Shown: positions 6,001 to 28,517, counted from the first letter of the stretch. The stretch: 32,485 nucleotides of DNA from Lenisia limosa (GCA_001655205.1 LPNZ01002774.1:1-32485); one strand, 5' to 3'. A program made the numbers and translations. The notes: generated from the letters alone by a model not told the origin.

Positions 6001-8779
6001 GGGGAGGAATTTGCATCTGTATTGTCAAAGCATGACCAAGCTTATAGTCAAGGTACATGGTTCAACAGTATGTCAGCAGCATGTGAACTGTGTCCGGTGA
6101 ACACGTTCAGAGCCGCCAACATGGCTCCTGAGAAATGTATCACCTGCGACAGAACAACAGAATCACCCGTCTTTGGCTCACAATCATCGGAATCCTGTAA
6201 GTGTCTCGCAGACTTCTATCTTGCTGAAGTGTTTGCCCCTGACACGCCTCCAGTCTGTCAGCAGTGTCCTATTGGTTTGAGGATCATGCAGCACTACCGA
6301 AATGGCTATCTGATTTTACAGGAGCTGTATGCAATGGAGCTCTTGCAAGGCCTGAGGCTTCAGAGGGTTTTTATCATAGCGAAAGTGAGGAACACTTCCT
6401 TCGGTGTCCCAGTGGTATGCCTCATAGAACGTCATGTTCCTTACATGTTGGTGTTCTCACAAAATTCAATTACGGCTGTTTTTGTTTCTGACATGTGATT
6501 TTATTGTCAATAACCACCCCAGGGCTTGATGGATGTTAATAATCACCCCAGGGCTTGATATGGATGTTAATAACCACCCCAGGGCTTGATGGATGTCTTG
6601 GTAAGTCTAATTGTGCGGAAGGATACACGGGAGATTTGTGCAGTAGATGCGAGAGGAACTACTACAAACGTCAGTCAAAATGCCACATTTGCGATGAAAT
6701 GTCTTTATACATGCTTCCTATGGTGCTTGTTGGTATGAGGGCAATCCATAACAACTTTCACTTTTAAACGAGTAGTTATGACAATCATTTGTTCCATTAT
6801 CTATGCTGTTGGATGGAACGTGGGGCCAACAGCGACTCACTATGGTAGTCTCAGAATTCTCATTCAGTTCCTTCAGGTGTGTGGGAACACTGTGTTTGCA
6901 AGGTATTAAAATTATTTGTCGATAACGAGTTATTTTGATTGCATGGTTTTTGTCCTATACAATAAATGACGTTTTGGTGCTAAAATTATTGACGTAAATT
7001 ATTACCCAATTTTAGGTTGTTGCTGTGTACGGTGCTTTTGAGATTAACTGGCCATCCTTGGTCAGTACCCTCTTTAATCATCTCCAAGCGTTTGTTTTGG
7101 ATGTTGAGGTGAGATTTGGCAAAATTGCTTTTGGACAATTTATCTTCATATTTGACACTCACAAATATAGATTGCCAATCCAGAATGTACTTTTGGAGTT
7201 TCAATGACATTTATTGAGGTAGGGATGGCCGTTTTGGCTGTGTTAACATTTTAGAGGTACATTATGGGTGCCATGCTACTTCCAATTTCAGTTTTCATTG
7301 CCACCGTTATTTCATTGATTATTTTGGTTTTCGCCCGTTCAGAAGTAGCCAAGTGGGCAAGCGGCTACATAAAAATTATGTAAATCAAATGCGCATAAGA
7401 AGTGTATCATAAGTGTATTTCTTACACAACTAAATGCAGGGCATTACAAACAATCATGTGTCTATGCACTGTCGCTGACATTGACCAAAAAGGGACTGTA
7501 TGATCCGAACAATTCTGGTAGTCGCCACAGTGATGCATTTGGCGGGTTGTCTGTCCAGTCTGGACTATCTCAACTGCCGTCTGGCTGAAGATGGCAGATG
7601 GCTCTCTGTGTCATGTAGGGACTTTTAGCAGCTGTTGTTACTATGTAGACCCCTCACAAGAATGTTATGATCAGACCTACAATGATGGGATTCCAATATT
7701 CATTGGATTTGCATTTGTCAATGCCGCACTACCGGCACTTCTTGTTTACTGTTGGTCATTGATTTCTCCTACTTGTACTTTTTATCAAATGACTTTTATC
7801 TTCATATCTATCCATCCGAGCTATTGGGATTATTGTAACTACTCAGTCGAATAGAAGATATCGTACTTTAACCTTTCAGATTTGGTTCAAAAGAACCATG
7901 ACGTTCTTCTTGAAGAGAACTCAATAAGAAAGTGAGTCCCATTGCTGGTCTTTCTCTAACTTTTAATGAAACTTGAAGACATACTAGTGGTTCACCTTTC
8001 CCTCTCCATGACAATTGTCTAGGTATGGCTTCCTGACAGCTCGCTTTGACCCTGACCTGTGGTGGTGGGAAATGGTGTACTTCACAAGATCCCTTACTCT
8101 TGCCGTTGCGACTAAAATCTTATCGTCCAACACAATGGCACAGGTATAGTTGGAGTAATGTGTATTGGAATACGTCTGGCATCTAAAGGTTCCAGATTAT
8201 GCTGGTGTTTATTATTTTGATGGCAAGTCACGCGCTGTCATCGCACAAACAGCCTTACCTGGCTACCAGCCTCAACCGACTGGAGGCGACGTGCAATGTA
8301 GTCAACCTGTTGGTCTTGGCCATATCGCCGTCATTCGTGGCAGATGAAGTAAGCAGGGTAACAATGGCGTCTTCGAGGAAATAGTTAATAACAAGGAAAT
8401 AATGTTTATAATTTCATATAAGAGGTAGAGTCCAACAGTTTACTTCGAACACATAAAAACTATATGTAACACAAACTGTAGAGCGGTGAAGAACCCGAGG
8501 CCTCCAACAATGTTATTTTGGAAACTTTCCTTCTTCTCTGTTTCTTGACAACGCCTGTCATGACTGTCATCTCTTTCTACAATGTGGGTGCTTGGTTACA
8601 CTCATGGCAGCAGAGTCGTCACCTTGCTATTTACTTCTATCATATTGTCTCAGAATTATTGGTCAATCTCACATTCTCATTTCACATTGTAGGAAATGAG
8701 AACGGATTTAAAGGAGGAGGATCCTTACAACATGGTATGCCCAGAAGAGAAACACTTGGCAGAATGCAAAATAGAATGA
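1..8779 (+). CDS. Multi-exon gene, probably 5'-partial: large cell-surface protein with beta-rich ectodomain, Cys-rich (ephrin-receptor-like/GCC2-GCC3-type) repeats and a C-terminal multipass TRP-like (PF06011-type) membrane domain
   Basis: GT-AG bounded exons join in phase. Cys-rich exons include CVCPDGHGLDAITASCTSCLSGYY and CELCPVNTFRAANMAPEKCITC...GSQSSESCKC. These are followed by CAEGYTGDLCSRCERNYY, LRILIQFLQ...INWP, YGFLTARFDPDLWWWEMVYFTR and KQPY...NRLE. Last exon is 8693..8779 (EMRTDLKEEDPYNMVCPEEKHLAECKIE, TGA). N-terminal exon boundaries are approximate. Confidence 0.8.
4668..6700 (+). other. Cys-rich repeat region of gene 1 (ephrin-receptor-like/TNFR-like repeats)
   Basis: Repeated CxxC, GxY/F and S..DC/SC patterns occur across successive exons (e.g. 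ORF 6022..6498 and 5018..5320 fragments). Confidence 0.7.
6509..6596 (+). repeat. About 29-31 bp tandem repeat x3 spanning an intron 3' splice site (taaccaccccag|ggcttgatggatgt)
   Basis: Read directly: AG at 6521-22, 6550-51 and 6581-82. Unit 2 differs (taat, extra AT). Confidence 0.95.
6700..8583 (+). other. Multipass membrane domain of gene 1 (about 8-9 hydrophobic segments)
   Basis: Hydrophobic exons: MLPMVLVVMTIICSIIYAVGW; YIMGAMLLPISVFIATVISLIILVFA; MIRTILVVATVMHLAGCLSSL; IPIFIGFAFVNAALPALLVY; MLVFIILMASHALS; VVNLLVLAISPSF; ETFLLLCFLTTPVMTVISFY. Confidence 0.75.
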
Positions 8780-9482: not shown

Positions 9483-12400
9483 ATGTCAGACGTGGACGCA
9501 GACGTTCCAACGCCGCGCTCTTCATTGCGACAAAGGAGTCCTGACGCTGAGTTCACCTTCACTGCACCAAAGCCGAAAAAGAAACGTGCATGTTGTATTG
9601 TAGGTGCTTTTGAGGGCGTTCTTATCCTTTAGCCACAAGCCTCATCCCCTGCCACTGTCACCTCTCCCTCCCCTCCCCCTTCCATCTCAGCCGCTCTCCC
9701 CAATGCCTATTCCCCACAGACAAAAGTCAAAGTTGGCTGTGGTTGTGTCATCGGAGTAAGGGTTTTGTTGGTCTTATAAAAATGGGAGATCAGTCATGGT
9801 TGATCACCTTGCACCTTCCGTGTTCGAAAGCACCTCTTTCTTTTCATGAGAGTAGATTACTGGCGAGCCATATTACGGCCTCTACGACACTTTTGACGAA
9901 GCGCAAAAGTCTTATCCCCTCCGAAGTATCATTGTGGGTATTCTGTCGAGTCTCGTCTCTCATTTCTCTCTCTCCGGCTGCAACGTCATGACCATATAGC
10001 CGCTTGAGGACTCGGCAATCCCGGAAGACTCTTGCGCGCTCTGTCTTGCTGGTGGGCCCACAACCGTGATTCTTGCCTCTAATTGCACTCACGGTTGCAG
10101 TGGTCGATGGAGATGACTTCCTAATGTGCTGCGAGTGCTCGTTGGTCTTCCACATCACCTGCGCATATCCCGGTAAGTTTTGGCGCGCAAATCTGGTTCT
10201 GGAGGTAACATCACTACGGTCCAGAATATTATGAAGGACGATAAATCAGCCTTTTTTTGGAACGCATAAGTCTAGCCTTTTTTGGAACGCATACCTTGTG
10301 GAGGAAGGCATCTGACTTCATCACATTTTTCGATTTGATTTTTTTATTTTTATTTTTTATTATTATTATTTTTTTACCCTCAACCCGATATCGTATTTGA
10401 ATTATGCTGAAATTCCTATGAACACTTCACGATAATAACCACATAGATGCGGACTCCAGCCCTGAGCTCCCTTTGAACAGACGCACGGATTGGCGTTGTT
10501 GTGCATGTAACTTCTGCCCCAACTGCGAAGAGCGCAATGCGGTTCTCGAGGCCGACACTGTTGGGGGGTCAGTTATCTTCTTTCATGATTCTTCATTACT
10601 ATTATGATTTCTTGAACTTTCTCTGACCTCCAAGTTGATGTGCGACTGCTGTGACAGAGCCTACCACCGTGGCTGTCTAACTGAAGTTGAGAGCAGAGGT
10701 CCGCCTGGGTATCAATGCGCATTGAAGCTTTTTCTGAACTTTTTGCTCAATTGAATTGAAATTGAGCTTTCTTTGGATTCCACAAGAATGTACATATTTC
10801 CAAATGAATCTTTAAATAGCAATATTTCAGGGCTTTTTACAGAAAAGCCAATCAATTTCCCCTATTTATTAGTGACCCTCCAGATGTCCTTGAGACAGAT
10901 CGGTTTGTGTGCACATGGTGCCGATGCTGCAGCGGCTGTGGGCAGTGTACGGTCAAGTCTGGTCGGGACGGCAAGTGTTTGGATTGTTCGTCAAGCGAAT
11001 CGTCAGCATGCCCAGTGTGTCGACGGGTATGCATGATTCCGAGATTTTGGCAAAACTCTTAATTTGTGCATTCTATGATCATTTTTTGGAATTTAATGCT
11101 TTAGCTCTATAACGAGCAAACAAAAGACCCGATGATTCAATGCGAGAAATGTGACAAGTAAGTCTCATTGGTGGGATTTCGTTTCACCTTCAGATGGGTG
11201 CATATCGAGTGTGACGGGATTGCTCCGGAGCTTTACGACGTACTCAGTGACTTCCCTGATGACATGCCTGAGGAACAGTACTTCTGTCCGAGTTGTGATG
11301 GCAGACTTCCGTGTTTGTTCACTGTGGGCAATTTGATTTGGCTTCTAAGCTTCGTGTTTCTTGACTTGGGTTATTCATTTCTGATTGTTTGATTTTTGAA
11401 GGAAAAGCATCCGCGTTTCGAGTCTCTGGATCCGCTGAAGGACTACTCCAATCAGCTGAAGGTGAGATCTTAAAGACGGCTTTGTTTTTTGGGTTTGAGT
11501 CCAACAAAGGCTTAATTTCTAATTGTTTTTTCTGTTGATTACTGCTTTAGTGTCGTTCTTATAGTGTTTTTATTGATACCTTGTTGAATAATAATGATAT
11601 TTTCTTGCACTTTTTTTTTTTTTTACTTAACCCTTTTAGAAAGCACCCGCTCCGAAACTCGAATCAAGTGAGTACCCTCCCCCATTGTTGTTTGCTTCAT
11701 AGTGATGGGATTTCTCCTTCATAACCCCTAGATGTTGCATGCAGTATCAATACGGCTTTCAAGGGGCTGACTCCAACAACGGTAAGCACTGGCAAAGAGG
11801 TAGCGTATCAAAGAAGGTTTTTTTTTTAACTAATTTCACTCACAAAATTGTGACATGTTAACAATGTTTTTTTTTTTGATAATCTTTGAAAATGGTAGGC
11901 CTTTTCATTGTTGTTCTACAGCATGAGAGGCTGACCAGACAGGATTCTGTGACCGTTCACCATTGTCCGGAAGTGCCGTTCTCTGAGACCATTCGCGACC
12001 TTACCCTCCCATCTGACCAACGAGGTACGTGGGGGGCTTTGAGATGCCCTTTCCAAGAGATAGACTGGGCCCCCATATATGTGTTTCAGACACTTCGTTA
12101 ACGAGCTTTGTTTTCACCCCCCCCCTCCTCAGATTTTGAGATCAAAATGGCAATACCTGTGCCGGCTAAGAGGCCTGTCATCAAGTNNNNNNNNNNNNNN
12201 NNNNNNNNNNNNNNNNNNNNNNNNNNNNNNNNNNNNNNNNNNNNNNNNNNNNNNNNNNNNNNNNNNNNNNNNNNNNNNNNNNNNNNNNNNNNNNNNNNNN
12301 NNNNNNNNNNNNNNNNNNNNNNNNNNNNNNNNNNNNNNNNNNNNNNNNNNNNNNNNNCCCCAGGGGTGCTTTGCTTACTCCACGCAGGTCCACCCCTCTT

Positions 12401-15400
12401 GTCTGTACTGGGCCTCTCGCTTGAAGCTCCACGAAGACAGTAACAATAAGGTCGCATGCCTGGCGTCACCGATGGTCGAAATTTGCCAGTACGCTCCACT
12501 ACCTTCATACCCATCTATCAAACACAACTTTATAATGTAGTTCAAATATTTTGATAGTTTGTTAGTAATAGTATGTATGATATGATATGATATGGCATTC
12601 CACACCGACCTATCTAACACTTAGCCCCTCAACTTGCGACGCATCTAAGTGCGTAGCCGTTCAGCCCGCTACNNNNNNNNNNNNNNNNNNNNNNNNNNNN
12701 NNNNNNNNNNNNNNNNNNNNNCCGTGTCCGAAGGTCATGCATTTACCGTGTGCTGTAGAGGATGGTGGGGGCAGGGGCAGTTCTCTCTCTCTCATATTCT
12801 CCAGTTTTTTTTTATTAGCATATTGGTAGAATTCTCTCGTGTTGGCATTGATTCCACTGACGTGTTAGGATGGCAGTTCTTCAGTCCGCGCCACGCTGTT
12901 TGTCCTGAGCACGTCTACTCTGTAAACGTCTGTGGCTCTTTTTGTTGTCGCATTTCTTTCTCGCAATACGTGCATACTTCATAGAATGGACCATTATCTT
13001 CATCGTTTATGTTTCCTGTTTATTGCAGATATCCTATCAGTTTATTCTTTTAACACCAGCAGCATTTGAGACGAAGGGTTGATCCAGCCTGTTCCATAAG
13101 AGGACTTGTTGTTGTCGCCGCCATAACGGAAGAGGCTGCAAGGAGCTATGCTCGGTATGAACTTACCACCCGTTTGTTAGCATCTTTTCATTTGGGGTAT
13201 TCCCATTGCATGAGCAACTTATCACATAATGAGATATATGTACATACGTAAATGTATTTCTATTCTCATATTGCGTACCACATCCGTTGTTATCGAACCA
13301 GCCTGATCTCGCGAATGGCGCACAACTCAATAGGGCGCTATCGTGACTCACTGTTCACTGTCTATGATGCCATTCCAGGCACCAGAGTATCAAATTTGGT
13401 GAGAGTGATGGGCATGGGTTCCTTTTGATTCTGGAACCTTTCGTGCGACTTTCCAGTTCCTGTTCGTGATTAATATCGTAACTTCTGCAGGTGCTGCAGT
13501 CTTCAGACGCGTCACATGCCTTCAGCGAAGAGAACGGTGTCCCCGAAGCGCTGGTCAGAAACAAGCTGTACGAGGCAGAAGCCAAACTCTCCACTTTCGG
13601 TAGGGGGGTAATAGTTGGTAAGGAGAAGACTGTACTATTGTTCGTTCAGCACCCCTCTTTCCTGATGCCATTAACTGGAAAAGGTCTCCGGTCTCCCAAC
13701 GGCGTTACAATCTTATCTCCCGGTCGCATTGTCTCAGGCCCTCACGCCAAACGATGGAACTACAGGAATACCATCAATACACTTGGTAGGACGTAGCTTT
13801 GGTTCAATGGGTATAATGTTCATTTTATTGTGATGGGATGCGGTGCTGCAGAAGCGNNNNNNNNNNNNNNNNNNNNNNNNNNNNNNNNNNNNNNNNNNNN
13901 NNNNNNNNNNNNNNNNNNNNNNNNNNNNNNNNNNNNNNNNNNNNNNNNNNNNNNNNNNNNNNNNNNNNNNNNNNNTGTAAATGGTCCTTTTCGCCAGTTA
14001 AAAGGTCTACTCGCGCACTCTTTGTCATTCAGGTGTATTGGGCTGTCCATCATGAATCCTCGGGTGATACACTTATGTTCTTTTCCTGTTACGCTCATTC
14101 CTGTTTAACTTCTTTAGTGTATTTCGAAGTCCAACGCTGCTCTCCCTGACTTTTGCGTTATTTCCAAATGCTCCCCTGAGACACCCGATACCTCAGGGTA
14201 AGCTGTGTTTATTGGCAACAGTTTGTGCATTATTTCTTTCCGAACGAGTGTGAATATGTCTTTTGATATTACCACCCTCTGGATGTATGAAGTGTTTTGG
14301 ATGAGTGGTCAGCTGATAGAAAACAGTAGTAGTCCGTTAATGTAATATTTGCCTCTCTCTTTTAGTTTGTTCTGTAGTTCACGGATTTCACCCCCACAGT
14401 TCCGGAGTGATCACGGCGGCGTCAACGGTGACGTCATCATGGGGCCATGTTCAGACATACAAGGGCGCCGACGCCACCAAGGACGAAAGGACACTCAGCA
14501 GTGGGGGGGGGGGTCATCGCCGTTACTTTTGATTCGTCGTGCGTTCTATTGCTTTTTTCCCTTGGTAACACAACAGGCATTGCACAAGAGCGTTACGATT
14601 TCTTCCACGCCAATACGCCCTGGTCTGGCCCCTGGCTCGAGAGAGCAGCAAGAATGATCGACAGTCGAACTGGTCTGCTGCATTTCCGTGTATTTGTCAT
14701 ATTATCGTAGCGGCTTTTAAGGTTTTCTTTACGTTTGATGTCAGGGTGTCTCTTTTCAATCCTCACAGTTTAGAAATCATCACTCGGCCTGTTGTGTCAC
14801 ACAATCGAAGCGAACTCTGCATCAGAGACCTCAACAAACTCTATTTGGAGCTCAACAACATCGACATTGACAAGATAGGACAGGAACCACGCGAGGTTGC
14901 TGAAGAGCAGGCAAAGGACTCAGATGAGTGTCCAATTGAACCTCCCACTGGAGAAGATGAGTGTTCTCAAGTTGACAAAACAGAAGAAGGCCAGACAAAC
15001 AAACCCCCACGCCCTTCCACGCCTACCACAAATAGCAGTAGTGACGATGACGCGTTCTATACTCCCGACCCGCCGGACAACTCCCCAGTCTTCGTGACAC
15101 CCAGCAGCCAGTCACCGTTAACACCAAAGCCGGCACTGGACGACATTGCCAAGCTCAACATCTCCTCCACGCCCTCATCTCCGCCGTGCCAGCTGTTGCC
15201 AGTGAGCCCTGAGCCGCAGCTCACGTGTGATACTCGAGACCCTCTAACACCTTTGAAGCAACACGATGTTTCCTCATCCCCTCCTGAAGACAGCCCCGCC
15301 ATCACTGTAGAGGAGAACGTAGACCCTGCGCAGGCTGAAAATGACGAGCCGATTGCCCTTGATGGAGAGAATGACGAGCCAGTTGCCCTTGATGGAGAGA

Positions 15401-18225
15401 ATGACGAGCCAGTTGCCCTTGATGGAGAGAATGACGAGGCGACTGTAGTTGATGGAGAGAAGGGTTCCAAGCCAAATGAACAGGTGGATCCGCTACTCGA
15501 TATTACAAATTTGCTTCTGAAGAACCCGGAGGTTGGGGGAGGGTGTTATCCAAACGAACATTGGTAAAACCTGTATACACAGAGTTGTAATGCAAATGAT
15601 CCATTAATATAAGACAATAATGCAATATTTCTTATAAGCATGATGGTGTGGAAGGCTTTGACCAGTTACAGCTTTTTTTTTTTTTTCGCATCTCTTTATG
15701 ATTGATATATACACTGTCAAATATGACACGTGGGTGTGGTCAATTTAGCGCCTCATTGTGTTTTAGAGTCTAAAATCTGAGTAGCAGCCAATAATGTACT
15801 TTCAATATCATATTTATACACATTCACCCAACGGCCAGGTTCACACCCCTCACATTATTAGTGGAACGGCCAGGTTCACACCCCTCACATTATTAGTGGA
15901 ACGGCCAGGTGTCCCACGATTACGCAGTGGACGAAATGTTGAAAGCAGGCCCATGGTATCGAATTTCGGTGCTGCATTTCGAAGACGACGAGAACCCTGT
16001 TGTCTACCAGGTATGGCAATACAATCCCAAAAACGATATTATCTGTCTTTATTTTTGACCAAAACGAATCACCGATTTGTGTAGATGTTGTTTCTGCCGC
16101 AAGTTATAAAGTGAACATAGAACAATGCAGATAGTTGACAGTTTCAGGGGACTTCGCTCACCACCATTTGGAACAACATCCTCCAAGACGTAGCGGAAAT
16201 CAACAACAGTCCACCGCCGTCCCCCCAGGTGCGGAGGCTATAATGCAAGGATTCTTCAAAATAATGGACTGTAGTCATTTTTTTTACCTGTTTAGACTGA
16301 GGTGCAAGTGCGGAACTGGCTTGGCCTTGGAGGGGTATGAGCGGATTGTGATGCTCGATGTGAACTTATAGTATTCATTCTAGTATATATTTTTTAGAAC
16401 TTATTGTGTGATGAGATATTCTACCTTGTTAGCGGCTAACGCGACCAGGAAATGCATCGAGCCTTAGAACACTTCGATGGGGCCGATAGCTTGACTCCAC
16501 ACTACACGCCCAAGTTTGCTGTTGCACCAAAACCGTCTACTGACTCCATTGGTATGGGGATTATCAGAGCAATACTCAATTATCTCTGTTTTTGTTTCAC
16601 ACCATTCTGATATTACATCATAGCAGCCACATCATCTGTAGCCTTATTTCCGTCTATGCGAAGGCTTTTTTTTTTGAGGAAATTCTGTCTAAAAGTAGAT
16701 TTATTCAGAAGGGCCCTTCACCTCCCCCCTCCCCTCCACCAGGCGACTTCAAGGTGGATATGGACCCTCCAATCCCGCCCAAGGACCAGTGCTCACGGAC
16801 AGCACCGTATAAGAAGCGAGACGCGTCAGAGAAGGCACGGTTCCACCCCGTTTGTTTCGGTGGGATCCTGTTCCTCTGACATCTGTTGATCCTTCAGATA
16901 TGAAGTAAAATTAATTTCATAATTTGTGATTCGAGATTGCTCTCAGCACCCAAAATGTTTACGATTACAGGCTCCACACAGAACCCTCACGCTTGGAAGT
17001 TTGAGAACCGTGAAGTGCTGCACGAGTACTTGAAAGTTGCTGAGAAGGTGGCGCCGACGCACAGCTCTGTAAGCACCGGGTCAAAATGGGCAGGACAAGG
17101 CAAATTCAAGGTTTTGCTTTTTTGAAGCGTTGCGTTTTGAAACTGTCGAAAAGAGACATGATTACGTTTCGTTCCCCTCTTTGTAACCAAACTGCAGCAG
17201 TTGGAGTCGACGTTTGAGGGCAGGTACCAGACTTTTGTGAAGCATCGCGCGGCACTCCTTCCGAGAATACAGTCTAGACGCTCTCCGATCCATGCCTGGG
17301 GAGTGCTGACATTGGCGCCTCTTGTCAAGGGTGAAATCGTAGGGGGTCGTTTGGGTTGATGGAGGACCGGGAGTTGCTTGGTTTTGATTGAACCTCAAGA
17401 TCATCGAGTATGTTGGTGAAGTAATCAACAACAAGACATGCGAAGATCGCGAGTGTATCTACCATGAAACTGGCCAGGACTGTTATATGTTCCGTGTGTC
17501 CGACGACCAAGTCATTGACGCTACCAAAATGGTGAGGGAGCTGACTAACAACTTTCCTCTTCGACTTCTTCGCATCCCAGAGTAGCTTCATGTCTTATGA
17601 TATGCATCTTTTTTAGATGAGGTTTCTTTGCTTTGCTATGAAATAGACTTCCATGATATCGATATTTATAATGATTTCATCATTTTGGATCTCCTGAAAA
17701 CCCTATTTGTATAAAATTATTATCGTATGTTAAGTCTTTAATTGGGTTCAAGAGGAGAATGTGACATTCTGTAGGGAAATATGGCGCGGTTCCTCAACCA
17801 TAGTTGCAGCCCAAACTGTCAGACAGTTGACATCTGCGTCAATGGTGTCAATCGCATCCTCATCACAGCCAATCGTGACATCAAAGCGGTGGGCTAGAAT
17901 AGAGGGCACATGTGCAGTAATGATAACTAATGGCTTGAGGCTTAGCTTGGGCTTTACTTAAATATTGGTATTTATCGAGGATTTTTCGAGGATTTATCGA
18001 GAAATTCTTTGGGAACGTAAGGAAGCCAGAGGCTTTGTGTTCTGTCTGGTTGCTGGAACGTTTGGTTAATAGTGTGCTAATAAGGTCTTTGAGCGTTGGT
18101 TCAAACAACTTATGATCACTTTGCAGTACGAGGAACTGTGTTACGACTACCACTTCACGGAACACACCTTCGAAGAGCGAATGCGCTGTCTCTGTGGAGC
18201 TTCAAATTGTCGCGGGTTCATCTAG
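9483..18225 (+). CDS. trx: Multi-exon Trithorax/KMT2A-B (MLL1/2)-like histone H3K4 methyltransferase
   Basis: ATG at 9483 (MSDVDADVPTPRSS). PHD1-3 include CALC...LMCCECSLVFHITC, LMCDCCDRAYHRGC and MIQCEKCDKWVHIECDG...LYDVLSDFP...YFCPSC. ePHD, FYRN, FYRC and a WIN motif follow. SET exons 17198..17338, 17400..17531, 17775..17888 and 18127..18225 join in frame: RSPIHAWG...IIEYVGEVI...CYMFRV...[21 protein letters not shown]...EELCYDY...CLCGASNCRGFI, TAG. Exact orthology is not established. Confidence 0.92.
10021..11323 (+). other. PHD finger cluster (PHD1-PHD2-PHD3) of the KMT2-like gene
   Basis: Three C4HC3 fingers spread over about six exons. The third closely follows the MLL1 PHD3 pattern (CPVCRRLYNE...MIQCEKCDKWVHIECDGI...LYDVLS). 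Confidence 0.88.
10248..10292. repeat. Intronic direct repeat (agcc-T6/7-ggaacgcata x2)
   Basis: Read directly. Confidence 0.9.
12187..12357. other. Assembly gap (N run)
   Basis: N bases. Confidence 1.
12358..12920 (+). other. Extended PHD (ePHD/PHD4), interrupted by assembly gaps
   Basis: QVHPSCLYWASRL, KVMHLPCAVEDG and GWQFFSPRHAVCPEH match the H-x-x-C-x-x-W, HxxC and CxxH pattern of the MLL ePHD. Confidence 0.75.
12673..12721. other. Assembly gap (N run)
   Basis: N bases. Confidence 1.
13690..14200 (+). other. FYRN-like domain
   Basis: GVTILSPGRIV...NTINTLG and a downstream CISK...PDFCVIS resemble FYRN (GSLxIHSLGxIV...YPVGY...CxI...PxFxV). Confidence 0.6.
13857..13975. other. Assembly gap (N run)
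   Basis: N bases. Confidence 1.
15337..15456 (+). repeat. Coding 30-bp tandem repeat x4 (ENDEPIALDG, ENDEPVALDG x2, ENDEATVVDG) in an acidic, Pro/Ser-rich low-complexity exon
   Basis: Read directly in DNA and in ORF 14746..15567. Confidence 0.95.
15830..15910 (+). repeat. 35-bp tandem repeat (2 full units plus a partial) spanning a 3' splice site
   Basis: aacggccaggttcacacccctcacattattagtgg x2, then aacggccaggt. CAG|GT falls at AG 15837-38, 15872-73 and 15907-08. Confidence 0.95.
15909..16551 (+). other. FYRC-like domain
   Basis: Exons join in phase as WYRISVLHFEDDENPVVYQ-GTSLTTIWNNILQDV...-VRNWLGLGG-EMHRALEHFDGADSL, matching the FYRC pattern S..xW.xIL...xLG...VxxLIExLxGA. Confidence 0.65.
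16790..16810 (+). other. WDR5-interaction (WIN) motif, CSRTAPY
   Basis: PPIPPKDQCSRTAPYKKR aligns with MLL1 PPLNPHGSARAEVHLRK, just upstream of SET. Confidence 0.75.
17260..18225 (+). other. SET and post-SET domain
   Basis: RFLNHSC, ELCYDY and CxCx4C are intact, and exon lengths (132, 114, 99 nt) preserve the frame. Confidence 0.95.
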
Positions 18226-18335: not shown

Positions 18336-20427
18336 TTAGTTTATTGTATTCTTATGGTGTATATTATTGAATTTAAATTGTATCCTATTATGTGGTTCAT
18401 CTGTAGAGGGTCAGAAATGCCTCTCCAGTTACCTGAACAATTTTTTGGAATTGTGGAATTGACAGGCGGGCAACTTATTAGCAATTTCCTTAACCAACAC
18501 AAGAAAGATCAGCTGTGACGGTGAACATCATTATTAAGGTCAGATCATGAACAAGCCAATTTACAATAATTAGAATAAACTTCACTTCACCACTGCTGCA
18601 TCGTTTTTGGGTAAGTGAGAATTGCGGTTGTTAACACAGTCTCGAAAGCGGATCTGCTATTCCTCTTTTCCGTAAATGTTTTCTGTGTTTGTGTTGTGAC
18701 AGACATTTCCAAATAAGGAAATATGCTCTGAAAAGAGGCCCAAGATTGTAGGAAGGATTCTGAGCGGATACCACTGCAATTTTAGTTTTAGCCCTGTTGT
18801 TAATAGCATACATTCATTCACCTTTTCGTTGGTGTTTGTTAGGAATTTAGGAAGGAACAGTTTGAAAGAAATTGACCTACCATGAAATGCCCAATATTAG
18901 CAGACAAACTGAACGAATCTTTATCAAAAGACTTGAAAGAAAACTGCGATATGAGTGTACAATTTTGAATGGTTTCTTAACTATTCAGGTATATTTTTCC
19001 ATTCGCGCACTCGCTTGAGACCACATCATATAACCATTCCTTCAACTTCACTGAGTTTGGTATGTTTTCCGGGTAACATCCTATGAATATGTTAGTCTTC
19101 TGTAACCGTTTAGACTCCGTAAACCATCGGGCAATTGCCAATAAACTCCAGCGAAGGGAGTTTTCTGTGTCAGACAACCTAGTACTGTTGATCTAAAAAT
19201 GGTGTTTATTATATATGGCTCTATTGCTTAAGTATTGAAGTGAACAAATTACACTGTACATAATTTACATTGATCTTCACGAACCATGACAAACTAACAA
19301 CAGACAGCGCTTCTGAACGTCTCCTCAACCCTGGGCATTCTGAGTGTCTCGTTAATGAGAGTCTCATTGTTAATCCCTAGAATTGTTAGATTTATCATGA
19401 CAACATGGAGAGCTTCTTGATATTCCGATACAACAACATACAAATTGATAGATAACAACTTACCAAATTCCATGAAAGGGTTGTTTTGGTAACAGGCGTG
19501 TTGTAGTGATTTGGAGAATGGCATAATAATAAATCTGAGGGATTTAGATTTTACTCTAAGAGTAGACAGGCAAAATGGCATCTTTCAAATTACTTGCTCA
19601 TTGTCAGGTTATTTTATCTGCAATACAAACAATAAAAAAATAGAGTACAATGTATAAATATAAATACCTTGTCTCCATACCTAAGTTTAAGAGAAATATG
19701 TTTCAAAAACCATGATTTGGACTCATCCCTCTGGGCTTCCTGCCAATATGGCTGCATTTCCTCTTGTTCCAGCTCGATCCATTTGAAGGTTTGGAGAGCT
19801 GGCATGAACAGGTAGCTGTTGAAGATCGTAAAATAATTGGTTACCTACCTTTGTGAGGCCATTTTAACCAGTAGCTGAGCTCTGACAATAGGGTCATCTT
19901 GGGGTATTAGCAAAAAAATATTAGCATCAAAATAGTTTGCAAATTTTCAATAGAAAACAACGCGTTTGTGTTGAAAATACTCATACCGGTTGTTGGTAAG
20001 AGCGAGGTGTATCTGAAGTGTTTTTGGATATCAGAAGCCAAAAATAATTTGAACACTAATTCACGAAAATCTTTCCTAGAACATAAGTTTGCACGGCGGT
20101 AATGTGGCAAACAAACTTATTGACTTTGTCAGTGAGAAAGTTCATATCAATGTGGTTCAGTAATTTGAACATTTGACTGCAGCTGTACATGGTTAGCACC
20201 TAAAGTAATAAACAGGCATAAGGCGTTTTGATACGTTATTATGATGATAAGCAGGCACATGACATCTTGATACATTATGATGATTGTAAAATTAATTTTT
20301 TATAACATTTAAGAAATACTTACCGTGACGCCAAAGTACTCTTGATCAAGGGGATGGTTTCTTGCATAGAGCTCTTCTGCTGGGAGTCTGAAATGTTGGA
20401 GTTGATGGTACAATTCTTGATAATCAT
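18336..20427 (-). other. Degenerate protein-kinase-like (TK-like) domain, probably catalytically inactive
   Basis: Motif relics appear in kinase order: FRLPAEELYARNHPLDQEYFGVT; KDFRELV...KHFRYTSLL; LRFIIMPFSKSLQ; SLLAIARWF...IFIGCYPENI...VKLKEW; FMWYPLRIL...LFSEHISLFG; FETVLT...TYP; IPKNCSDE; PHNRIQF. There is no HRD or DFG. Confidence 0.55.
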
Positions 20428-23400
20428 CTATCATATATTACTTGCATTGGATGACAGCCCGTAAATGTAGATCCCCAGCTTACCCGAAATGACCAACTTC
20501 CAATGCTGTTAATGCAACAAGAATTGCCAGAATCTCGACGTCAGTGTAGAATCTGAAAGTTCAATACACCAAACATAATGTCTAGAATAGTGAAAGCAGT
20601 TTTAAGAAAGACTAAAAGGATCGAATACGAGAATTACAATGTACATTTCATTATCATCAAACCCTGGTAGAACCTTGCTCGCGGGTATTGTCTCTACTTA
20701 TCAAAAGACTTACTTGGGACTCTCAGAAAAGACAAGGCCGAAGCCAAAGCTGAGAACCTTAGCTGTTAATAATTACGAAATCATGACACAAAACATGTTC
20801 ACTTATGTCACTGCAAGGGTCGTACCTGTGCAGCCCTTGTTGCACAATGGAACTTATTATTTTGGTAACTCGCCTCGATGTTCAATACCCAGGACCTAAA
20901 TATTTGAAATTAACTTGTAAATTGTTTGAGGTTTACCACTTATTCTCACTCTGAACAAAATCCCTGGTTTCGCTACCCCAGGCGGCGAAACCGGTGGTTT
21001 AGAAACTTTATTCTCAACTTCCCTCCTACAACAATTTTTGTTGGTCAACAAGAGAGGACAAGTTCCAGTATGATTGGTGCATGATTTGAGCGAAAGTATG
21101 TGTTAGTACATAGTCTTGAATCATCAGCAAACACAATAAGGGGCCAACCAGGGTCAATAGAATGGATGATAAAAGGGTCGAAGTCAAAGCTCAAACATTT
21201 AGCAGTATGCTTTTGGATATCTAGCGAAGACCTTCAATGTTTAGGGCAAGATACAGTTTACATACACACATACATATTCCATAACATTTATGAATTTCCC
21301 TAACGTACATGTTGCGAAAGTCATTTGCAGAATTGGATGAGTTAATTCTACTAGGTAACAGGGATGTTTTATAAGTTTTAGTTATGTGCCGAAAACAATC
21401 ATTGTTAGAAGAAAAAGTTTCACCGCGTACAAAGCTACTGTGGGTTTGAGCACAAACTGTAACTCGCCTTTTTTATTCCAGTCCATAAACCACCATTCTA
21501 CTGGTGAGTCTTTCAGTGGAACTGGGGATTTCTAGTTCATTAGCATTTGAGTCATAAAATCGATATATATATAATATATAGTATATAATATATAATATAT
21601 AGTATATATACATATGATATGATAGTACATACAGTATACCCCCTGATATGAACTAAAAAACCATAACTAACGGTGGAGCCAAGAATAACAGGTTTGCTCT
21701 CTGCTACATAGTCCATTGCATGTGAACTTCCTGAGTAATTACTCAAATGGCTCCTTATATTTGCTTCATACCGTCGTCTTCATTCAGTTGGAGAAGGTCA
21801 ACTCTCGGCAGCCCTAAAATATCAATAAAGTGCTTATACGTACAGATAAAATTTTTAATGTAAGAATCAAAGGTTAACATGTGATCAACATAGACACTGA
21901 GACACATTATTTCCAATCACTGTGAAGAACGCTCATGATGACTCCACAGTGTCGAAGATTACGTTTCTGAGTTGGTTTGCCCAAACGAAGATCCTACAGT
22001 GCAAGAGTATAGTTAAAGAGAGCAAAATAACAGCGTTCTCTATGTCTTCACACAATTTACCTACTAACCTTTAACAGTGACGTTAGCTGGTTTTTACATA
22101 ATTGTAAATGTGTTTCAGGGGAGCTTGTGAAATCAGCCTTGAAGAGTTAGTTGCAATGTTTCTAGGTACAGAACCTTCATAAATGCCATTGACTGTCTTG
22201 TCTTGCTGCCTCGGAGATATATGTGTAACAACACAAAGCCTTAAAGGTGAGTTTGCGAATATCCTACCAATCAGAAAGAGGAATATCATAATTGAAATGC
22301 TTGCTATGAGCATCGAGATGCTGTTCTATTGTGTGAGCGCTGGAATCTGTCGCACAAATACGGAGATATTGTCTTTGTATTCAACTTACATCTTCTTGTT
22401 CTCCAACGGCTGGAATATTGAAGGTAAAGTTTCCGCTGGCTTAATGGTTAGATAGGATGATGGATCCGAGACATCAAATATTACATCCAAAAATATTTTT
22501 ACTTCAATGCCAACCTAAAAGTATGTCTTTGTTGTAGACGAGGATATTGACAAAACAGGTTCCGTCACCAACTACGTCATATCCTTATGGGTAAGCTTGT
22601 TTGTTCAAAGTCTGAGATTTCTAGCTGAGTTATCTACGATATCACATTTCATCGTACCAGAGAGAGACATCGAGCTTCGGGCTCCTTCAAAATGGAGAAC
22701 TTCATCTTTTGGAAATATATAACGTATTTTTGTAGGTGATAAAACCATCTTTCTACTGTAGCCTTTACGAAAGCTAATTCTGTTGTTGTAAAACGAAGTA
22801 AAAAGAATTGAAAAAGTAAAACGCGATGCAATTGTGATTTTGTATTTAGATGGGTAGTGCCGACAAACTAAATGACTCACTTAATGGTTGTGGAATTGCT
22901 GTTATAGTTGACCAAGTCACAAACTTCCACATTGACTTGAAAAGGATTTCTTGTTGCAATGTTAACTATTGTCTTTTGATGAAGAATCAAGTCTAAATTC
23001 CTGAATTTGTGAAAAAGAAAAAACTATCAGCTTTCTGCTTTCCTCTAGTATGCGATTATTTATCAGTAAAATCTATCACTAAAACTATTTGAGTCTCAAA
23101 ATGGTATCATCACTTTAAAAGATGATACTTTTTCCATTCTATTCCGAAAAAACCAAATCATGAATAGTGTATATCCAACCTTCCCAGGTGACTGTCGTTC
23201 TCATAAACTGTTGAAACCACTACAAAGTAAAACGCCAGTTTACAATGCATGCCTATTGTCCCACAAACAAGTGCCTGTTGAATATAAGTTCAGATTAAAG
23301 TGATGTATCGCAACCTTTGAAACGGACCATCTTAAAAGTTAAATTTTAATTGTTGCCTCTGGGCGCCTACATATTCATCCGAATGAGATTGAGTTCTTCA

Positions 23401-25490
23401 TCACTTAAACACGTTTTGTTTGGAAGCACTGTATATGGAGAACAGAAGGGATCAACATTACCACTAAAAAACTCTTCGAATTCGTTATATAACTAAATAT
23501 TAGAAAACACATGCAGCTTCTTACTTCAAATGTCTGGACAGGTAAATTTTCAAGTTTCATTTGGAAATCATTTTGGGTAATTTGGGAGAAGTTTGAGGTT
23601 CGAATTGCAGATAACTACATTTTGGTTCGGTTAAATGTCCATTGATTCGTGAAAAAGTGTAACATTTGTCGTAATGTAACGCCTACCATTGAAGTTATGA
23701 TGGATTTTGTTTGATAAACCTACATTGTAAATCCTCACCCTCAATACACACGTCAATGATCATAATATCATTGTAATTGCTGTCCGCCAACTGTGGATGT
23801 CAACAGTCCATCCCCCAGAATGGACCGGTGCGGGCCAATGTCCGATATACACGGCATATACACGTCAATTGCAGCTAAAGTAGTTATTGTTAAACGTGAA
23901 AATACATATTATACATGTATACCGTGACTCTTACCTCTACAAGCAGAGGTTCCCAACGTAAACGACATAATCACGTCAACCCCCTAAACAATTACAAAAT
24001 ACAACACCACCTTACATATCGTTGACGAAGTAGCAAAGGGCTAATTGAACTGTATATCGAGTCGTAAAACCCAATCCACTCGACAAACACCTTACACTCT
24101 GGACATTTGTATTGTACTCCTATAACGGTAAACTAATGATAGTTTTCAACCTAATGAAAACGCCTGCAGTTGGAGATGCCCGGTCTCAAAGCCGTATACA
24201 ACACCAATCTGATACTTTAAGAAACAATTCATTTTCATTATCCATTTGATATCCCTTACCCGTTTTGACATGCTATTTAGTCCAGCGATAACACCCTTCA
24301 TGAATGGAAAGTGATAACTGGAACAATTAGCGTAATAATTCATGAATGTAATACGTTATTGGTGAAGTCCCGGTATATTTTCCAAAACAATTCCTCCAAC
24401 TCTTCACTTCTGAGGATTTTCAGATTCATTGGAAATATCATGTTTTCTGAAGATCTGAATTCTAGTTAAAACATTTGTGATAACTAACTTAACAAATGGT
24501 ATTTTTTCATTATATGTAAATATCAATGTACATGAATATGTATAAGAACCACGGTGATATAGCACGATAACTATTCATTTTACTCTTTTAACTATGATTA
24601 AGACTTTAATTCTCCGTATTATGTTAAATATTGTCAGGAGATGCATACGCACTGGAATCTCTCTTCAATTGAAACCTACACTAACAAGAAGTGATCATTT
24701 GGAAATTCGCAGGCAAATTTTGCAACCTTTTCTGAAGTATAATAATATCGACATGTACACTCTCCACATTTCGCAATGCCATACTTTGATTAAAGCCTGT
24801 GTTTGGATGTACAATGAACAGGTCAGTCTCATTGGACTCTTTCCTAACAATCTAACAAGTAAAAAACAACTCTCAAGAAATATCTCAAGCGTGTGACTTG
24901 ATCAGCGATATTTGATAAGATCATGACTTTTCAGCCTACATCAGCAATCTGGCCTAATTTGTCTATTGCTAGGTTAACACTCTGGACAATTAAAAACAGT
25001 ACCACCACAGTTCTTCAGCTTACCACAATGTGGTTTTCAGAATCTTCAAAGGATTCCATAACGTTTAAAATGTCTTCCTAACAGAATGAGGACAAATACC
25101 CTCCTTGTTTTTTTGGTTTGAAGTCTCTATTCAAGCCCTACTTACAAATGCTCCATTTGTAAACGAAAGACGCGTCTAGATGGTTAATGTATCAATGAAT
25201 TCAATTTGAGTATCCACCACCTACCGATCCTGCAATGAAAGAGACACTGAATGATTAAAATCTCCATATAAAAAGCAAGTTAATTCTTCCTGGTACCCAA
25301 CAAACCGCATCGCTTTACGATGTTTTGTCCACTGTGCTTCATTTTGCAAGATCACTTCATTGCATTCCGTGATAAATTGAAGATATTCTAAAATGTCAAA
25401 ACTGACAGTCCATTGTTCTAGGAGCAAGTAAAGTGTGAAACAACCTGGGTTATCGTCAAAATTTTCGTTAATATCGGGATTTGCTGACAT
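18336..25490 (-). CDS. Multi-exon gene, putative receptor-like pseudokinase: BMP/PrnA-like substrate-binding domain, unknown beta-rich region, TM-like segment and degenerate tyrosine-kinase-like domain
   Basis: Many minus-strand GT-AG exons join in phase (e.g. 24260..24317, 24151..24208, 24016..24119, 23935..23983, 20324..20427). ATG at 25490 (MSANPDINENF); a further upstream exon at 25779..25806 is possible. Stop TAA is inferred at 18336-38. A few junctions are unresolved, so the single-gene model is an inference. Confidence 0.6.
20228..20284. repeat. Intronic imperfect direct repeat (ttgatac...ttatgatgat x2)
   Basis: Read directly. Confidence 0.75.
21563..21622. repeat. TA-rich microsatellite-like tract in an intron of gene 3
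   Basis: atatatatataatatatagtatataatatataatatatagtatatata. Confidence 0.85.
23290..25290 (-). other. BMP/PrnA-family (basic membrane lipoprotein, type 1 periplasmic-binding fold) domain
   Basis: Spliced peptide: LSFTNGAFEDIL; DLFIVHPNTGF...KVAKFACEFPNDHFLL; FMKGVIAGLNSMSKRIGVVYGFE...AFSLGVQYKCPECKVFVEWIG; GVDVIM; LLTST; FSGNVDPFCSP; LSDEEL...MNIWSVSKV. These follow the order of remembered BMP motifs (SFNQSAYEGL; GYDLII..GF; KVAKEFP; YLAGVxAG..TK.NKIGFVGG; AFALGAxxVNPxxKVxVxWTG; GADVI; VLTS; I.SG..DPFTGP; L.D.EL..M.WFVEGV). Confidence 0.75.
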
Positions 25491-25980
25491 TGTTGCTCTG
25501 AGATCTGGGTATTTCTCTTTTCAGCTTCTGGTTTTGAAAAGCAACAAAAAGTGTTTCCTAAACTCCATCAAATTTTTAAATCTGCAATCTTTCACACGCT
25601 TTAGCGTTTTGTGATGTGGGGTAACAAATTGTTATTAACCATTAGAGACCATTAACGTAGAAGCATAAGGCGTATGATTGGCTATACCAAGGAATTTTCC
25701 GAAAGAACTTCCTTATCAGGTAAGTCAATCATGACAGATATCATCATTTGTTTATTTTGGGTGAGTGATCTTATTCACCCATTCCGAGAAAAATTATAGC
25801 AAACATCAAAAGAGCAAAAGAACGTAATTCTACTCAAGCTCTGTTGCTCAGACTAAGCACAGCATGAAGAATGACGGACATCTCTGACTCATCCAATAAT
25901 TCCGAGCTTCCGAGCCACCATATTCTAAATACTTTTCATTTGTCATCGCTTCTCTGATAGTTCTTAGAATCCATATCACA

Positions 25981-28517
25981 ATGTCTAGAGATGCTAATGA
26001 TGAAAAAGCTGCATGGGACCTCCTAGCCCGTTTGGATGAAATGTTCTCAACTATTGGGAAGCAGAACACCAGGTTTGATTCAGATATGCTCTGAATTATG
26101 TTTTTTACCTTATGATATCCAGCACAGAAGAACTTTTTTTTCATTTTCACGGATTTCATCCTTGAACGATTTAGAAAGGAGCTGTCACAGGAAGCGAAGG
26201 CCGCCAGGGCTGCAATAGTCTCTGATGTTGTCGAGGCTATTTCAAATCACAAAGGTTCGGGTATTGCGGTCACTCTTGTTGATCTTGCTGCTTTTGTAAA
26301 ACCCCTTCTCCACTGAATGGAACTTTGTTCTTCAATGCTCTTTTGTGTACTAATTAAAAACATACTATTGTTTGGTAATCAGCAGTTATTACGCTACACT
26401 CCTTCACGGGGGCAATTTTTTTTTCCCACTTGTCACCCATCCACACATTTATCAGCCGTTTAGAGTTCAAAGAGAGCACCTCCCTTCTCTTCGCCAAGTG
26501 TCTCCAGGTCTTCACTGCCCTGTTTGAAGGCCACAATGGTGGCACTCTTGTTGGTTTGGGTTTGGTGAAATGCTTTACATATTTCAAGAGTGACGGAATT
26601 ATTTACCTTTATTTGAGATTGCTAGTGTTTGATTTGTTGCAGTAGTGGTTCTTTCTTCACATCCAAGTAGTGACCTCCTATTTGGTCACACGTTTTGTTG
26701 AGTTCTTTACGCCTAGCTGTTGGTATTTTGACCTGATAATATGATGAAATCTATTTTACCAAAATCCATCCTCGTGACCCCCCCTCCCCAGGTCCCTGTT
26801 ATTATGTCGATGTCTTTAGTTTCGGTCTTCCAGGCCCAGACAGACGCCTCAGTGCTGACTGCATGTGCTCAATTGGTGGCTGGGCTGTCTGTGTTCTCCT
26901 TTATTACATCTGGAGCCAAGAGCCAGATACTTACAAAGGTAACATGCATAGGTTTCGGCAGTGTGTCGTTTGGCTGAAATAAAGCCTGATCTTCTTGAAA
27001 TGGTATGTTGGTTACTGCAAGCGTAACAATTTTAATACCATAAAATACCTTAACCCTCGCCATTTTGTTTGAGTATATCTTTCAAAGATGTTTTATTTGA
27101 GAGAACAAATCAAAAGCAATTCATGTTCTCATCACATAGGAAGGAGTCAGAGCCACTTTACTGAAGGTCCTCTCAAGCCAAGATGAGACCCCCCTCTTAG
27201 TAGCCGACAGTATTGCAAGGGTATTGAAATCTGTCCCATCTGATGCGGCCGCGCAGCTTGGTTGCTGGGGTTATTAAAGCTACAATCTAGTTTTACAACT
27301 TTTGATGACTGTCCATTTTGTTTTCAGTCATAATCGACCCCCCCCCCTGAACAGTTTCCTCAATCCAAACGGCTGATATTCCAAGTACAAATACAGTGTG
27401 TCTTTGTGACGCCATTTTGGAGCTTTGTGAAAAGACCAACGAGACTCCTCCACAAGCTGCTGGGTGGGCTATCTTCTGGAATGTGATCGTAGACTGTCAA
27501 TTATCACAACTACACATAACTTCCTATTTACCTCACATCAACAAAGCTACTGTGAATTTATCCAAGTAGACCGCTCTTCAGCGAACTAGATCAAATGATG
27601 ACGTCACCAGATATGCTTCTGAGCTACGTTGCCAAGGCGTCAAGGGCAAAGGTCGGCTACCTGGGTACTCTGGAATGGACAATACTGTTATAATAATTGA
27701 ACAGACAGATTATCGGACTCTGTTTTCAGAAAGAGGATTTTGAAGAACATATGATACCATGTACAATGGTTTATTAAATGAAGTTTCTGATCAAATTGAC
27801 TTTAAATTTATTAACACGTCAGTTTTATCGCCTGAGTTCGTGCCCCGGAAGCAGCCCATTTTTAGCAGAAATTGAAAGCAATCCATCTGCATTAAAATTT
27901 GCTGCAATGGGAGCTTCTAATGTGGGTGTCTCCTCTGTCAAGAAAGTGTTGACCCCCGTATCGTTGTTACAAACATATTCAGATGTACATAGTGTTGTAT
28001 TATACTGTTTTGTCGTGATGCCAATAACTGTTTCGCAGTACCGGCAAATAAGCTAACCTTTTTAGTTGAATGAAGTTTCGGCAATTCTCAAAGCAAGCAG
28101 CAAAGTTCTTAGTCTTCATGGAATGGTAAGATACCAGTATATGTTATTCGTTAATATTCCAAAGAACAATTTCATTATATGATTGGCCAAACTTTATAAC
28201 CCATTCACGCCTTTCAGAAGTTTGTGGTGACAGCACTTGGCGAAATGAAGCTCAACGAAGAATCACTGCAGGCGTTTGCAGATGTTCCCGAATGTTTGCG
28301 TTGTTCTTGTATCATGATCATTGAATTTGTTTCACTATTTTCTTTTTGCTTCGTGCTTAGTGCTTCTGTAAATTGGTTTTAATCCTGTTTAGTTTCCAAA
28401 ATGTACTTTTCGGAGCTATCACAATCCTTGATACAAGATGGTATGAACAGCCTGGCACATGTCCTTGAAATCGGGTAGGATTTCGGGTTCTCTTTAGGAC
28501 TGACTGCTACAGTGTAA
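25981..28517 (+). CDS. Multi-exon gene, alpha-helical ARM/HEAT-like repeat protein of unknown function; one apparent frameshift at a T8 run
   Basis: From 26142 onward the exons join in phase: DFILERFRKELSQEAK; QTDASVLTACAQLVAGLSV...KSQILTK-EGVRATLLKVLSSQDETPLLVADSIARVLKSV; ...FSELSQSLIQD-GLTATV, TAA at 28515-17. The start could be further upstream (ATG 25871). Confidence 0.7.

Follow-up and report, generated by a model that had tools for sequence, protein, structure and literature searches.

The locus studied here lies on the minus strand of a 32,485-nucleotide stretch of DNA from Lenisia limosa (GCA_001655205.1, LPNZ01002774.1:1-32485; hereafter the window, with positions counted from its first letter), between positions 18,336 and 25,490. 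The DNA is eukaryotic and intron-rich, and comparison with profiles of known protein families recognises two domains in it, both encoded on the minus strand. The upstream one, at about 25.2-23.8 kb, is by its similarity a sequence of the BMP/PnrA type (PF02608), and the downstream one, at ~20.9-19.5 kb, is on the same grounds a homologue of the catalytic domain of class I phosphodiesterases (PDE; PF00233), in which the enzymatic activity has probably been lost. An initial annotation of this locus had described a chimeric receptor, composed of a BMP-type ligand-binding domain and a dead tyrosine-kinase-like domain. The outline of that proposal is retained, in that a BMP-type domain lies upstream of a degenerate signalling-enzyme domain on the same strand, but the enzyme is not derived from a kinase.

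Contig NODE_254 of the ENA metagenome assembly ERZ3820729 has the same sequence as the window, and the study behind it also includes a 2016 poly(A) metatranscriptome. Coding potential was assessed through a crude spliced open reading frame (ORF) search, whose score takes in open frames, GT/AG sites and amino-acid composition. The minus strand at 26300-18000 reached a score of 115, against 25-67 for the controls, which consisted of the plus strand, reversed sequences and 20 dinucleotide shuffles. When scored by region, the minus-strand signal was strongest at 25.5-23.7 kb (z 6.8) and at 20.6-18.95 kb (z 7.7), weaker and still strand-specific at 23.7-20.6 kb (minus z 2.5-3.8, plus -0.9 to 2.8), and absent above 25.5 kb and below 18.95 kb. 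Judged by this regional signal, the long chain of minus-strand exons first annotated is real at both ends but doubtful in its middle, and its 3' limit at 18336 was set too far downstream, the coding signal stopping near 18.95-19.1 kb, ~600 bases earlier. At the two ends, 21 exons could be arranged in two chains (19464-25175) with intact phase, canonical splice sites and neither stops nor forced frameshifts, all of their introns being of the GT-AG type and 31-225 nt long.

Domain families were searched for using local profiles of real family members, which were aligned to the DNA by a Viterbi search allowing GT-AG introns in all three phases, so that the resulting scores do not depend on hand-chosen exons. 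As references for each profile score, the same DNA was dinucleotide-shuffled and the remainder of the window was scored. Seed sequences for BMP proteins, Ser/Thr kinases and cyclases were taken from plasmids, further BMP proteins from a protein collection, and the out-group binding proteins from E. coli, while the tyrosine-kinase and PDE seed domains were picked by motif pattern from viral contigs. Typed consensus peptides were used as bait only, and the real sequences fetched with them were then checked by annotation and Pfam, the latter confirming PF00233, PF02608, PF07714 and PF00069 among the seeds, with PDE seeds at 125-217 bits. A scan of bacterial genomes for the PDE HD motif yielded 120 loci with no PDE among them. 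Contigs of giant-virus metagenome-assembled genomes (IMG/VR) were seen to code for tyrosine-kinase-like domains in which the HRDLAARN motif is exact, as well as for complete class I PDE domains, Pfam-confirmed for three.

A profile built from 21 BMP proteins scored 44.8 bits on 25700-23300 of the minus strand in the intron-aware search, compared with 14.4±1.5 (max 21.5) for 60 shuffles and at most 17.9 for 44 other 2.4-kb pieces of both strands. The path covers profile nodes 96-193 and crosses four GT-AG introns of 225, 83, 51 and 31 nt. Completed by hand to a chain of eleven exons (~25.18-23.77 kb) with 10 GT-AG introns of 31-225 nt, all in phase, it gives a spliced product that HMMER scores at 49.9-50.7 bits over nodes 86-197, in an envelope of ~194 residues (80-273). 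Furthermore, the window's three best collinear six-frame BMP matches all fall in this region. Profiles of two sister groups of binding proteins, RbsB/MglB/RbsR/GalS and LivJ/LivK, found no match on the product and their intron-aware scores stayed at noise; the assignment is therefore to BMP specifically, beyond the shared fold. The BMP/PnrA-like domain that had been annotated upstream is thus borne out, both on the DNA (44.8 bits) and after splicing (50 bits). Towards its ends the similarity fades: exons 25175-24940 lie inside the HMMER envelope and are not significant alone, the N-terminal sub-profile was not above shuffles, nor was the C-terminal one, with frameshifts allowed or not, and a frameshift-tolerant BMP alignment brought no gain. 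The last exon of the chain, 23874-about 23774, is followed by a stop at 23771-23773, with an alternative 25-nt intron at 23804-23780.

The likeness to the bacterial BMP/PnrA lipoproteins (PF02608, including the nucleoside-binding PnrA/TmpC) is confined to the central ~110 residues, from the last part of lobe 1 through the hinge to the middle of lobe 2. The strings in common with the family are K-V-A-K-x-x-P...F, N-V...G-x-x-A-G, a V-G-F-V-G-G-like one and G-V...P...V-x-V. Unlike its bacterial counterparts, the domain is encoded by an intron-split eukaryotic gene, with the E-G-S ligand-loop string replaced by H-F-P-F and the outer thirds unrecognisable, and neither a lipoprotein signal peptide nor neighbouring ABC-transporter genes were seen in the frames read. 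The domain had been likened to the substrate-binding proteins of bacterial transporters, a comparison that holds for the PF02608 similarity, but BMP domains also occur in receptors of Dictyostelium and Allomyces (PMC3251606). That a nucleoside would be the ligand is only a guess drawn from the family name.

The downstream domain was identified with a profile of seven PDEase_I domains, which scored 29.3 bits on 21100-18800 at an intron penalty of 8 and 40.5 bits at a penalty of 6, the match lying at 21.1-19.9 kb. Shuffles of the same DNA gave 16.0±1.6 and 17.4±1.9, respectively (max 23.6), and the rest of the window did not exceed 23.6. The profile thereby stands 8-12 standard deviations above the shuffles. 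A GT-AG chain of ten exons yields an open product of 284 residues, matching the PDE profile at 44.9 bits (E 4e-16).

The motifs of the PDE active site are conserved only in part. In exon 20895-20826, the family string F-H-N-F-Q-H-A aligns to F-H-C-A-T-R-A, so that the first His of the HNxxH motif is kept and the second is replaced by Arg. In exon 20552-20484, V-H-D-V-D-H-P-G aligns to A-L-E-V-G-H-F-G, with Leu-Glu in place of the His-Asp of the HD motif, and in exon 20075-19987 L-A-S-D-I-Q-K-H matches L-G-T-D-M-S-K-H (L-x-T-D-M-x-x-H). In crystal structures of PDE4, it is the second His of HNxxH and the His-Asp of HD that bind the zinc/magnesium pair. Because of these substitutions at metal ligands no hydrolysis is predicted, and the PDE-like enzyme is probably dead. 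In PDEs, the C-terminal half of the fold carries a fourth metal ligand, the glutamine switch and the Asp of the A-D-L-S-N string. The exons at 19897-19464, which would encode this half, carry a strong coding signal, and their similarity to PDEs is not significant, the sub-profile of the C-terminal half (nodes 186-322) scoring 13.2 against 13.7±1.5 for shuffles.

The kinase relics described initially in this part of the locus were not recovered. A profile of 7 tyrosine-kinase and tyrosine-kinase-like (TK/TKL) domains found no match on the spliced product and scored 16.1 bits on the DNA, against 14.9±1.7 for shuffles. A second profile, from eight bacterial Ser/Thr kinases, reached 13-14 bits on 20700-18300 (shuffles 14.7±1.0) and -2 bits on the product; as a positive control, it finds real tyrosine kinases at 65-125 bits. 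Both profiles were also negative on the region between the two domains, and neither they nor a cyclase profile found anything over 23.8-18.3 kb; no kinase signal arose from Pfam, PDB or Atlas searches of single pieces, and the residues concerned are those that align to PDEase_I. A cyclase suggested by eye from an L-F-G-N-V... string near 18.7 kb was discarded, a profile of six bacterial class III cyclase domains scoring 12.9 against 13.4-14.3 and having no match on the spliced product.

Searches with single pieces were blank because exons of 20-45 residues are too short: Pfam returned no BMP, kinase, PDE, cyclase or seven-transmembrane match on 50 stop-free pieces, phmmer against the PDB found nothing relevant for four exons, the ESM Atlas was uninformative for two pieces, and metagenome scans gave no relatives of two pieces. 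In a large protein search a 46-aa piece shared no words with any protein and the 89-aa first ORF matched only itself. Two repeat proteins returned by a representative search with a 56-aa read-through stretch were rejected, as the match lies in the intron-derived part.

The hydrophobic segment at 20484-20552 (V-E-I-L-A-I-L-V-A-L-T-A-L) had been proposed as a transmembrane segment. The hydrophobic stretch exists, but it comprises only ~13 apolar residues with Asp/Glu at its flanks and aligns to the buried core helix of PDEs just before the HD motif, and does not correspond to a membrane span. The reading of motifs by eye had taken a PDE for a pseudokinase and one of its core helices for a transmembrane segment. 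Better candidates for membrane helices are found at 21.18 and 22.32 kb. In exon 21189-21030, a hydrophobic helix of 23 residues (hydropathy 2.5) lies ~30 residues upstream of the PDE fold and is a candidate membrane anchor, and exon 22325-22098 opens with 19 strongly hydrophobic residues (hydropathy 2.42) followed by Gly-Arg, a stretch that constitutes a candidate membrane span.

Between the two exon chains, the sub-regions of the middle had z values of 3.8 and 2.8 for coding on the minus strand, where the plus strand gave -0.9 and 0.9. Pieces of 21190-23773 had no Pfam match, and the profiles of kinases, PDEs and BMP proteins gave no signal there. This middle region also contains, at 21563-21631, an (AT)n / ATATAAT microsatellite. 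The coordinates of all the features are collected in Table 1.

Table 1. Features of the minus-strand locus, listed from 5' to 3' of the predicted gene, with window coordinates.
Feature	Coordinates	Strand	Remarks
Putative first coding exon	25247..25490	-	ATG at 25490, in-frame stop upstream; donor and link to next exon uncertain
Putative exons of the N-terminal lobe (BMP)	25175-25146, 25077-25024, 24981-24940	-	GT-AG, in phase; S-F-x-N motif region
BMP core, six exons	24851-24785, 24731-24680, 24454-24401, 24317-24260, 24208-24151, 24119-24016	-	Profile alignment
Part of the second lobe (BMP), by position	23983-23935, 23874-about 23774	-	GT-AG, in phase; similarity not significant
Middle region, tentative	21190..23773	-	Moderate minus-specific coding signal, no recognisable family
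Candidate exon, 76 codons	22098..22325	-	AG...GT, phase 0 to 0, splice sites checked
First exon of the PDE chain	21030..21189	-	In frame with PDE exons, GTAGGA donor, within PDE alignment
N-terminal half of PDE, six exons	20895-20826, 20757-20714, 20552-20484, 20387-20324, 20199-20117, 20075-19987	-
C-terminal half of PDE, by position	19897-19849, 19815-19681, 19555-19464 (possibly to 19299)	-	Open frame, GT-AG
3' end of coding, approximate	18980..19300	-	Candidate stops 19081 or 18980 from alternative search paths

Outside the locus, the plus strand at 25500-26300 displays a clear coding-like signal (z 6 vs shuffles), probably from a divergent neighbouring gene, which bounds the 5' end of the minus-strand gene. 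On the other side, a SET-domain-like reading (KMT2-like gene) on the plus strand at 17330-17960 ends at ~17.9 kb and runs towards the minus-strand gene, whose 3' end lies near 19.0 kb. Further away, a plus-strand open frame of 158 aa at 6022-6498 contains regularly spaced cysteines and resembles by eye ephrin-receptor-like / GCC2_GCC3 repeats, and a run of N (scaffold gap) occupies about 12150-12450 of the window. The public ENA gene calls of this contig are of prokaryotic style, with TGA read as sense, and are of no use here; such products enter large protein collections. One of them, a 158-aa 'protein' at 24356-24832, exists only with TGA as sense, an artefact produced when genes in eukaryotic DNA are called as if prokaryotic.

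The reading that we favour, with a probability of about 0.58 as a whole, is that of one gene encoding a flytrap, a membrane helix and a degenerate PDE-fold domain. The product of such a gene would be a membrane protein, its Venus-flytrap domain for a small molecule being linked by at least one membrane helix to a PDE-fold domain that would no longer hydrolyse cAMP or cGMP. The latter may act instead as a cyclic-nucleotide-binding or scaffolding pseudoenzyme, e.g. as a partner of active paralogues, an idea prompted by the fact that PDEs work as dimers. As regards the fusion itself, the two domains appear on balance to belong to one gene of roughly 6.5 kb, because they share the strand and are connected by minus-specific coding signal, because the BMP-like domain is unfinished at 23.77 kb, because minus-strand coding signal is absent beyond 25.5 kb on one side and 18.95 kb on the other, and because the PDE fold starts in mid-chain and needs upstream exons.

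Several observations weigh against this interpretation. A confident alignment covers only ~110 of ~300 BMP positions, with the first and last thirds at noise, and only ~160 of ~320 PDE positions, with the remaining half at noise. The 2.6-kb middle resisted exon modelling, and once short introns are allowed any two blocks can be joined in frame. A separate downstream gene could begin at the ATG at 20434 or at another one. The N-terminus encoded at 25247..25490 is acidic, and no signal-peptide-like stretch or hydrophobic leader was recognised in it in the frames read. Stretches as hydrophobic as the candidate membrane helices arise by chance in this T-rich DNA (18 on the minus strand, 13 on the plus strand). 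Finally, the only RNA run of the study, the poly(A) metatranscriptome, contains none of the stretch.

Different scenarios might alternatively explain the locus. The first one involves two minus-strand genes, coding for a stand-alone BMP-like protein, cytosolic or secreted, and for a membrane-anchored degenerate PDE, separated by a long intergenic region or by a small third gene. The bimodality of the coding signal (z 6.8 and 7.7 at the ends, 2.5-3.8 between), the middle devoid of family signal, the in-frame ATGs upstream of the PDE part and the lack of RNA evidence joining both parts all agree with it. On the other hand, a BMP-like domain still incomplete at 23.77 kb implies that its last third must lie further on, the strand-specific coding signal persists in the middle, and no plus-strand gene was found in between. 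We consider the existence of two genes unlikely, although it retains appreciable weight.

Under a second scenario, the locus would be a degenerating, unexpressed paralogue (a young pseudogene) of an active family of BMP-sensor/PDE receptors, with frames still open and selection relaxed. The loss of the catalytic metal ligands and the absence of any trace in the poly(A) RNA run fit this idea, and the pattern of unrecognisable second halves in both domains is that of a decaying paralogue, which also counts against the favoured reading. Moreover, there is a possible frame change near 23.79 kb, where BMP-like similarity appears by eye to go on in another frame. However, a frameshift-tolerant alignment gains nothing, the 21 exons remain in phase between canonical splice sites, free of stops and of forced frameshifts, the composition-based coding signal is strong, and pseudoenzymes under selection show the same loss of motifs. 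Pseudogenisation seems rather improbable.

A third scenario, to which we would give slightly less credit still, is a class C G-protein-coupled receptor (GPCR)-like receptor, with a BMP flytrap and seven helices, fused to a C-terminal PDE as the breviate counterpart of the oomycete GPCR-PDE 'bigrams'. About seven hydrophobic stretches do follow one another on the minus strand between the two domains, and both halves of such an architecture have been documented, BMP plus seven-transmembrane regions in Amoebozoa and a fungus (PMC3251606) and GPCR-PDE fusions in oomycetes (PMC6033456). Nevertheless, the count of hydrophobic stretches is not above that of the other strand, no supported exon chain could be built from these stretches, and no piece had a 7tm_3 Pfam match. 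Lastly, a BMP ectodomain joined by a single transmembrane segment at 20484-20552 to a tyrosine-kinase-like pseudokinase is hardly tenable, for although short strings can be fitted by eye to kinase subdomains (L-D-Q-E-Y-F-G-V to the glycine loop, R-M-P near the C-lobe), the kinase profiles remain at noise where the positive control reaches 65-125 bits, and PDEase_I aligns instead.

The single flytrap and PDE-fold gene that we favour can be compared with several known systems. Class C GPCR-like receptors with a BMP domain number 13 in Dictyostelium and two in Allomyces (Krishnan et al. 2012, PMC3251606). The Grl receptors of Dictyostelium discoideum and Allomyces macrogynus share with the locus a BMP flytrap as the presumed sensor of a eukaryotic (Amorphea) membrane protein; in them the flytrap signals to seven transmembrane helices and G proteins, whereas here the output would be a PDE fold. 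Membrane receptors fused to PDEs are represented by the oomycete GPCR-PDE bigrams (van den Hoogen et al. 2018, PMC6033456), and fusions of a membrane sensor to a PDE by the rhodopsin-phosphodiesterases of choanoflagellates (PMC8774190). The likeness to both lies in a membrane sensor and a C-terminal class I PDE domain within one polypeptide; they differ from the locus in having a 7/8-transmembrane or rhodopsin sensor and in keeping the catalytic motifs, where here a soluble-type binding domain is found and the motifs are lost. The natriuretic-peptide receptor guanylyl cyclases and the receptor-type adenylate cyclases of trypanosomatids (PMC10470820) have a similar layout of binding fold, membrane span and cyclic-nucleotide enzyme, but these receptors make cyclic nucleotides, while the locus has the fold of a degrading enzyme and, by profile, no kinase-homology or cyclase domain.

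In a limited search of the open-access literature, no report was found of a binding-protein-type sensor joined to a PDE. The initial annotation knew of no characterised family with its architecture, a statement softened by the precedent of the Dictyostelium BMP receptors. Receptors with BMP ectodomains and receptors fused to PDEs are both on record, and their combination would apparently be new if the fusion holds. A bolder and more doubtful proposal is that the locus and its putative paralogues in the same genome represent an undescribed class of receptor enzymes, in which a BMP flytrap would gate a PDE directly across the membrane, as the degradative mirror image of the receptor guanylyl cyclases, this copy being a dead regulatory subunit.

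Receptor enzymes that make cyclic nucleotides are textbook knowledge, whereas ligand-gated enzymes that destroy them are, to our knowledge, known only as the rhodopsin-PDEs and the uncharacterised oomycete GPCR-PDEs. If our interpretation is true, the BMP flytraps of eukaryotic receptors would reach beyond Dictyostelium and Allomyces. The joining of a flytrap chemosensor to a PDE fold would then provide a new type of input for cyclic-nucleotide signalling, in a relative of animals and fungi.

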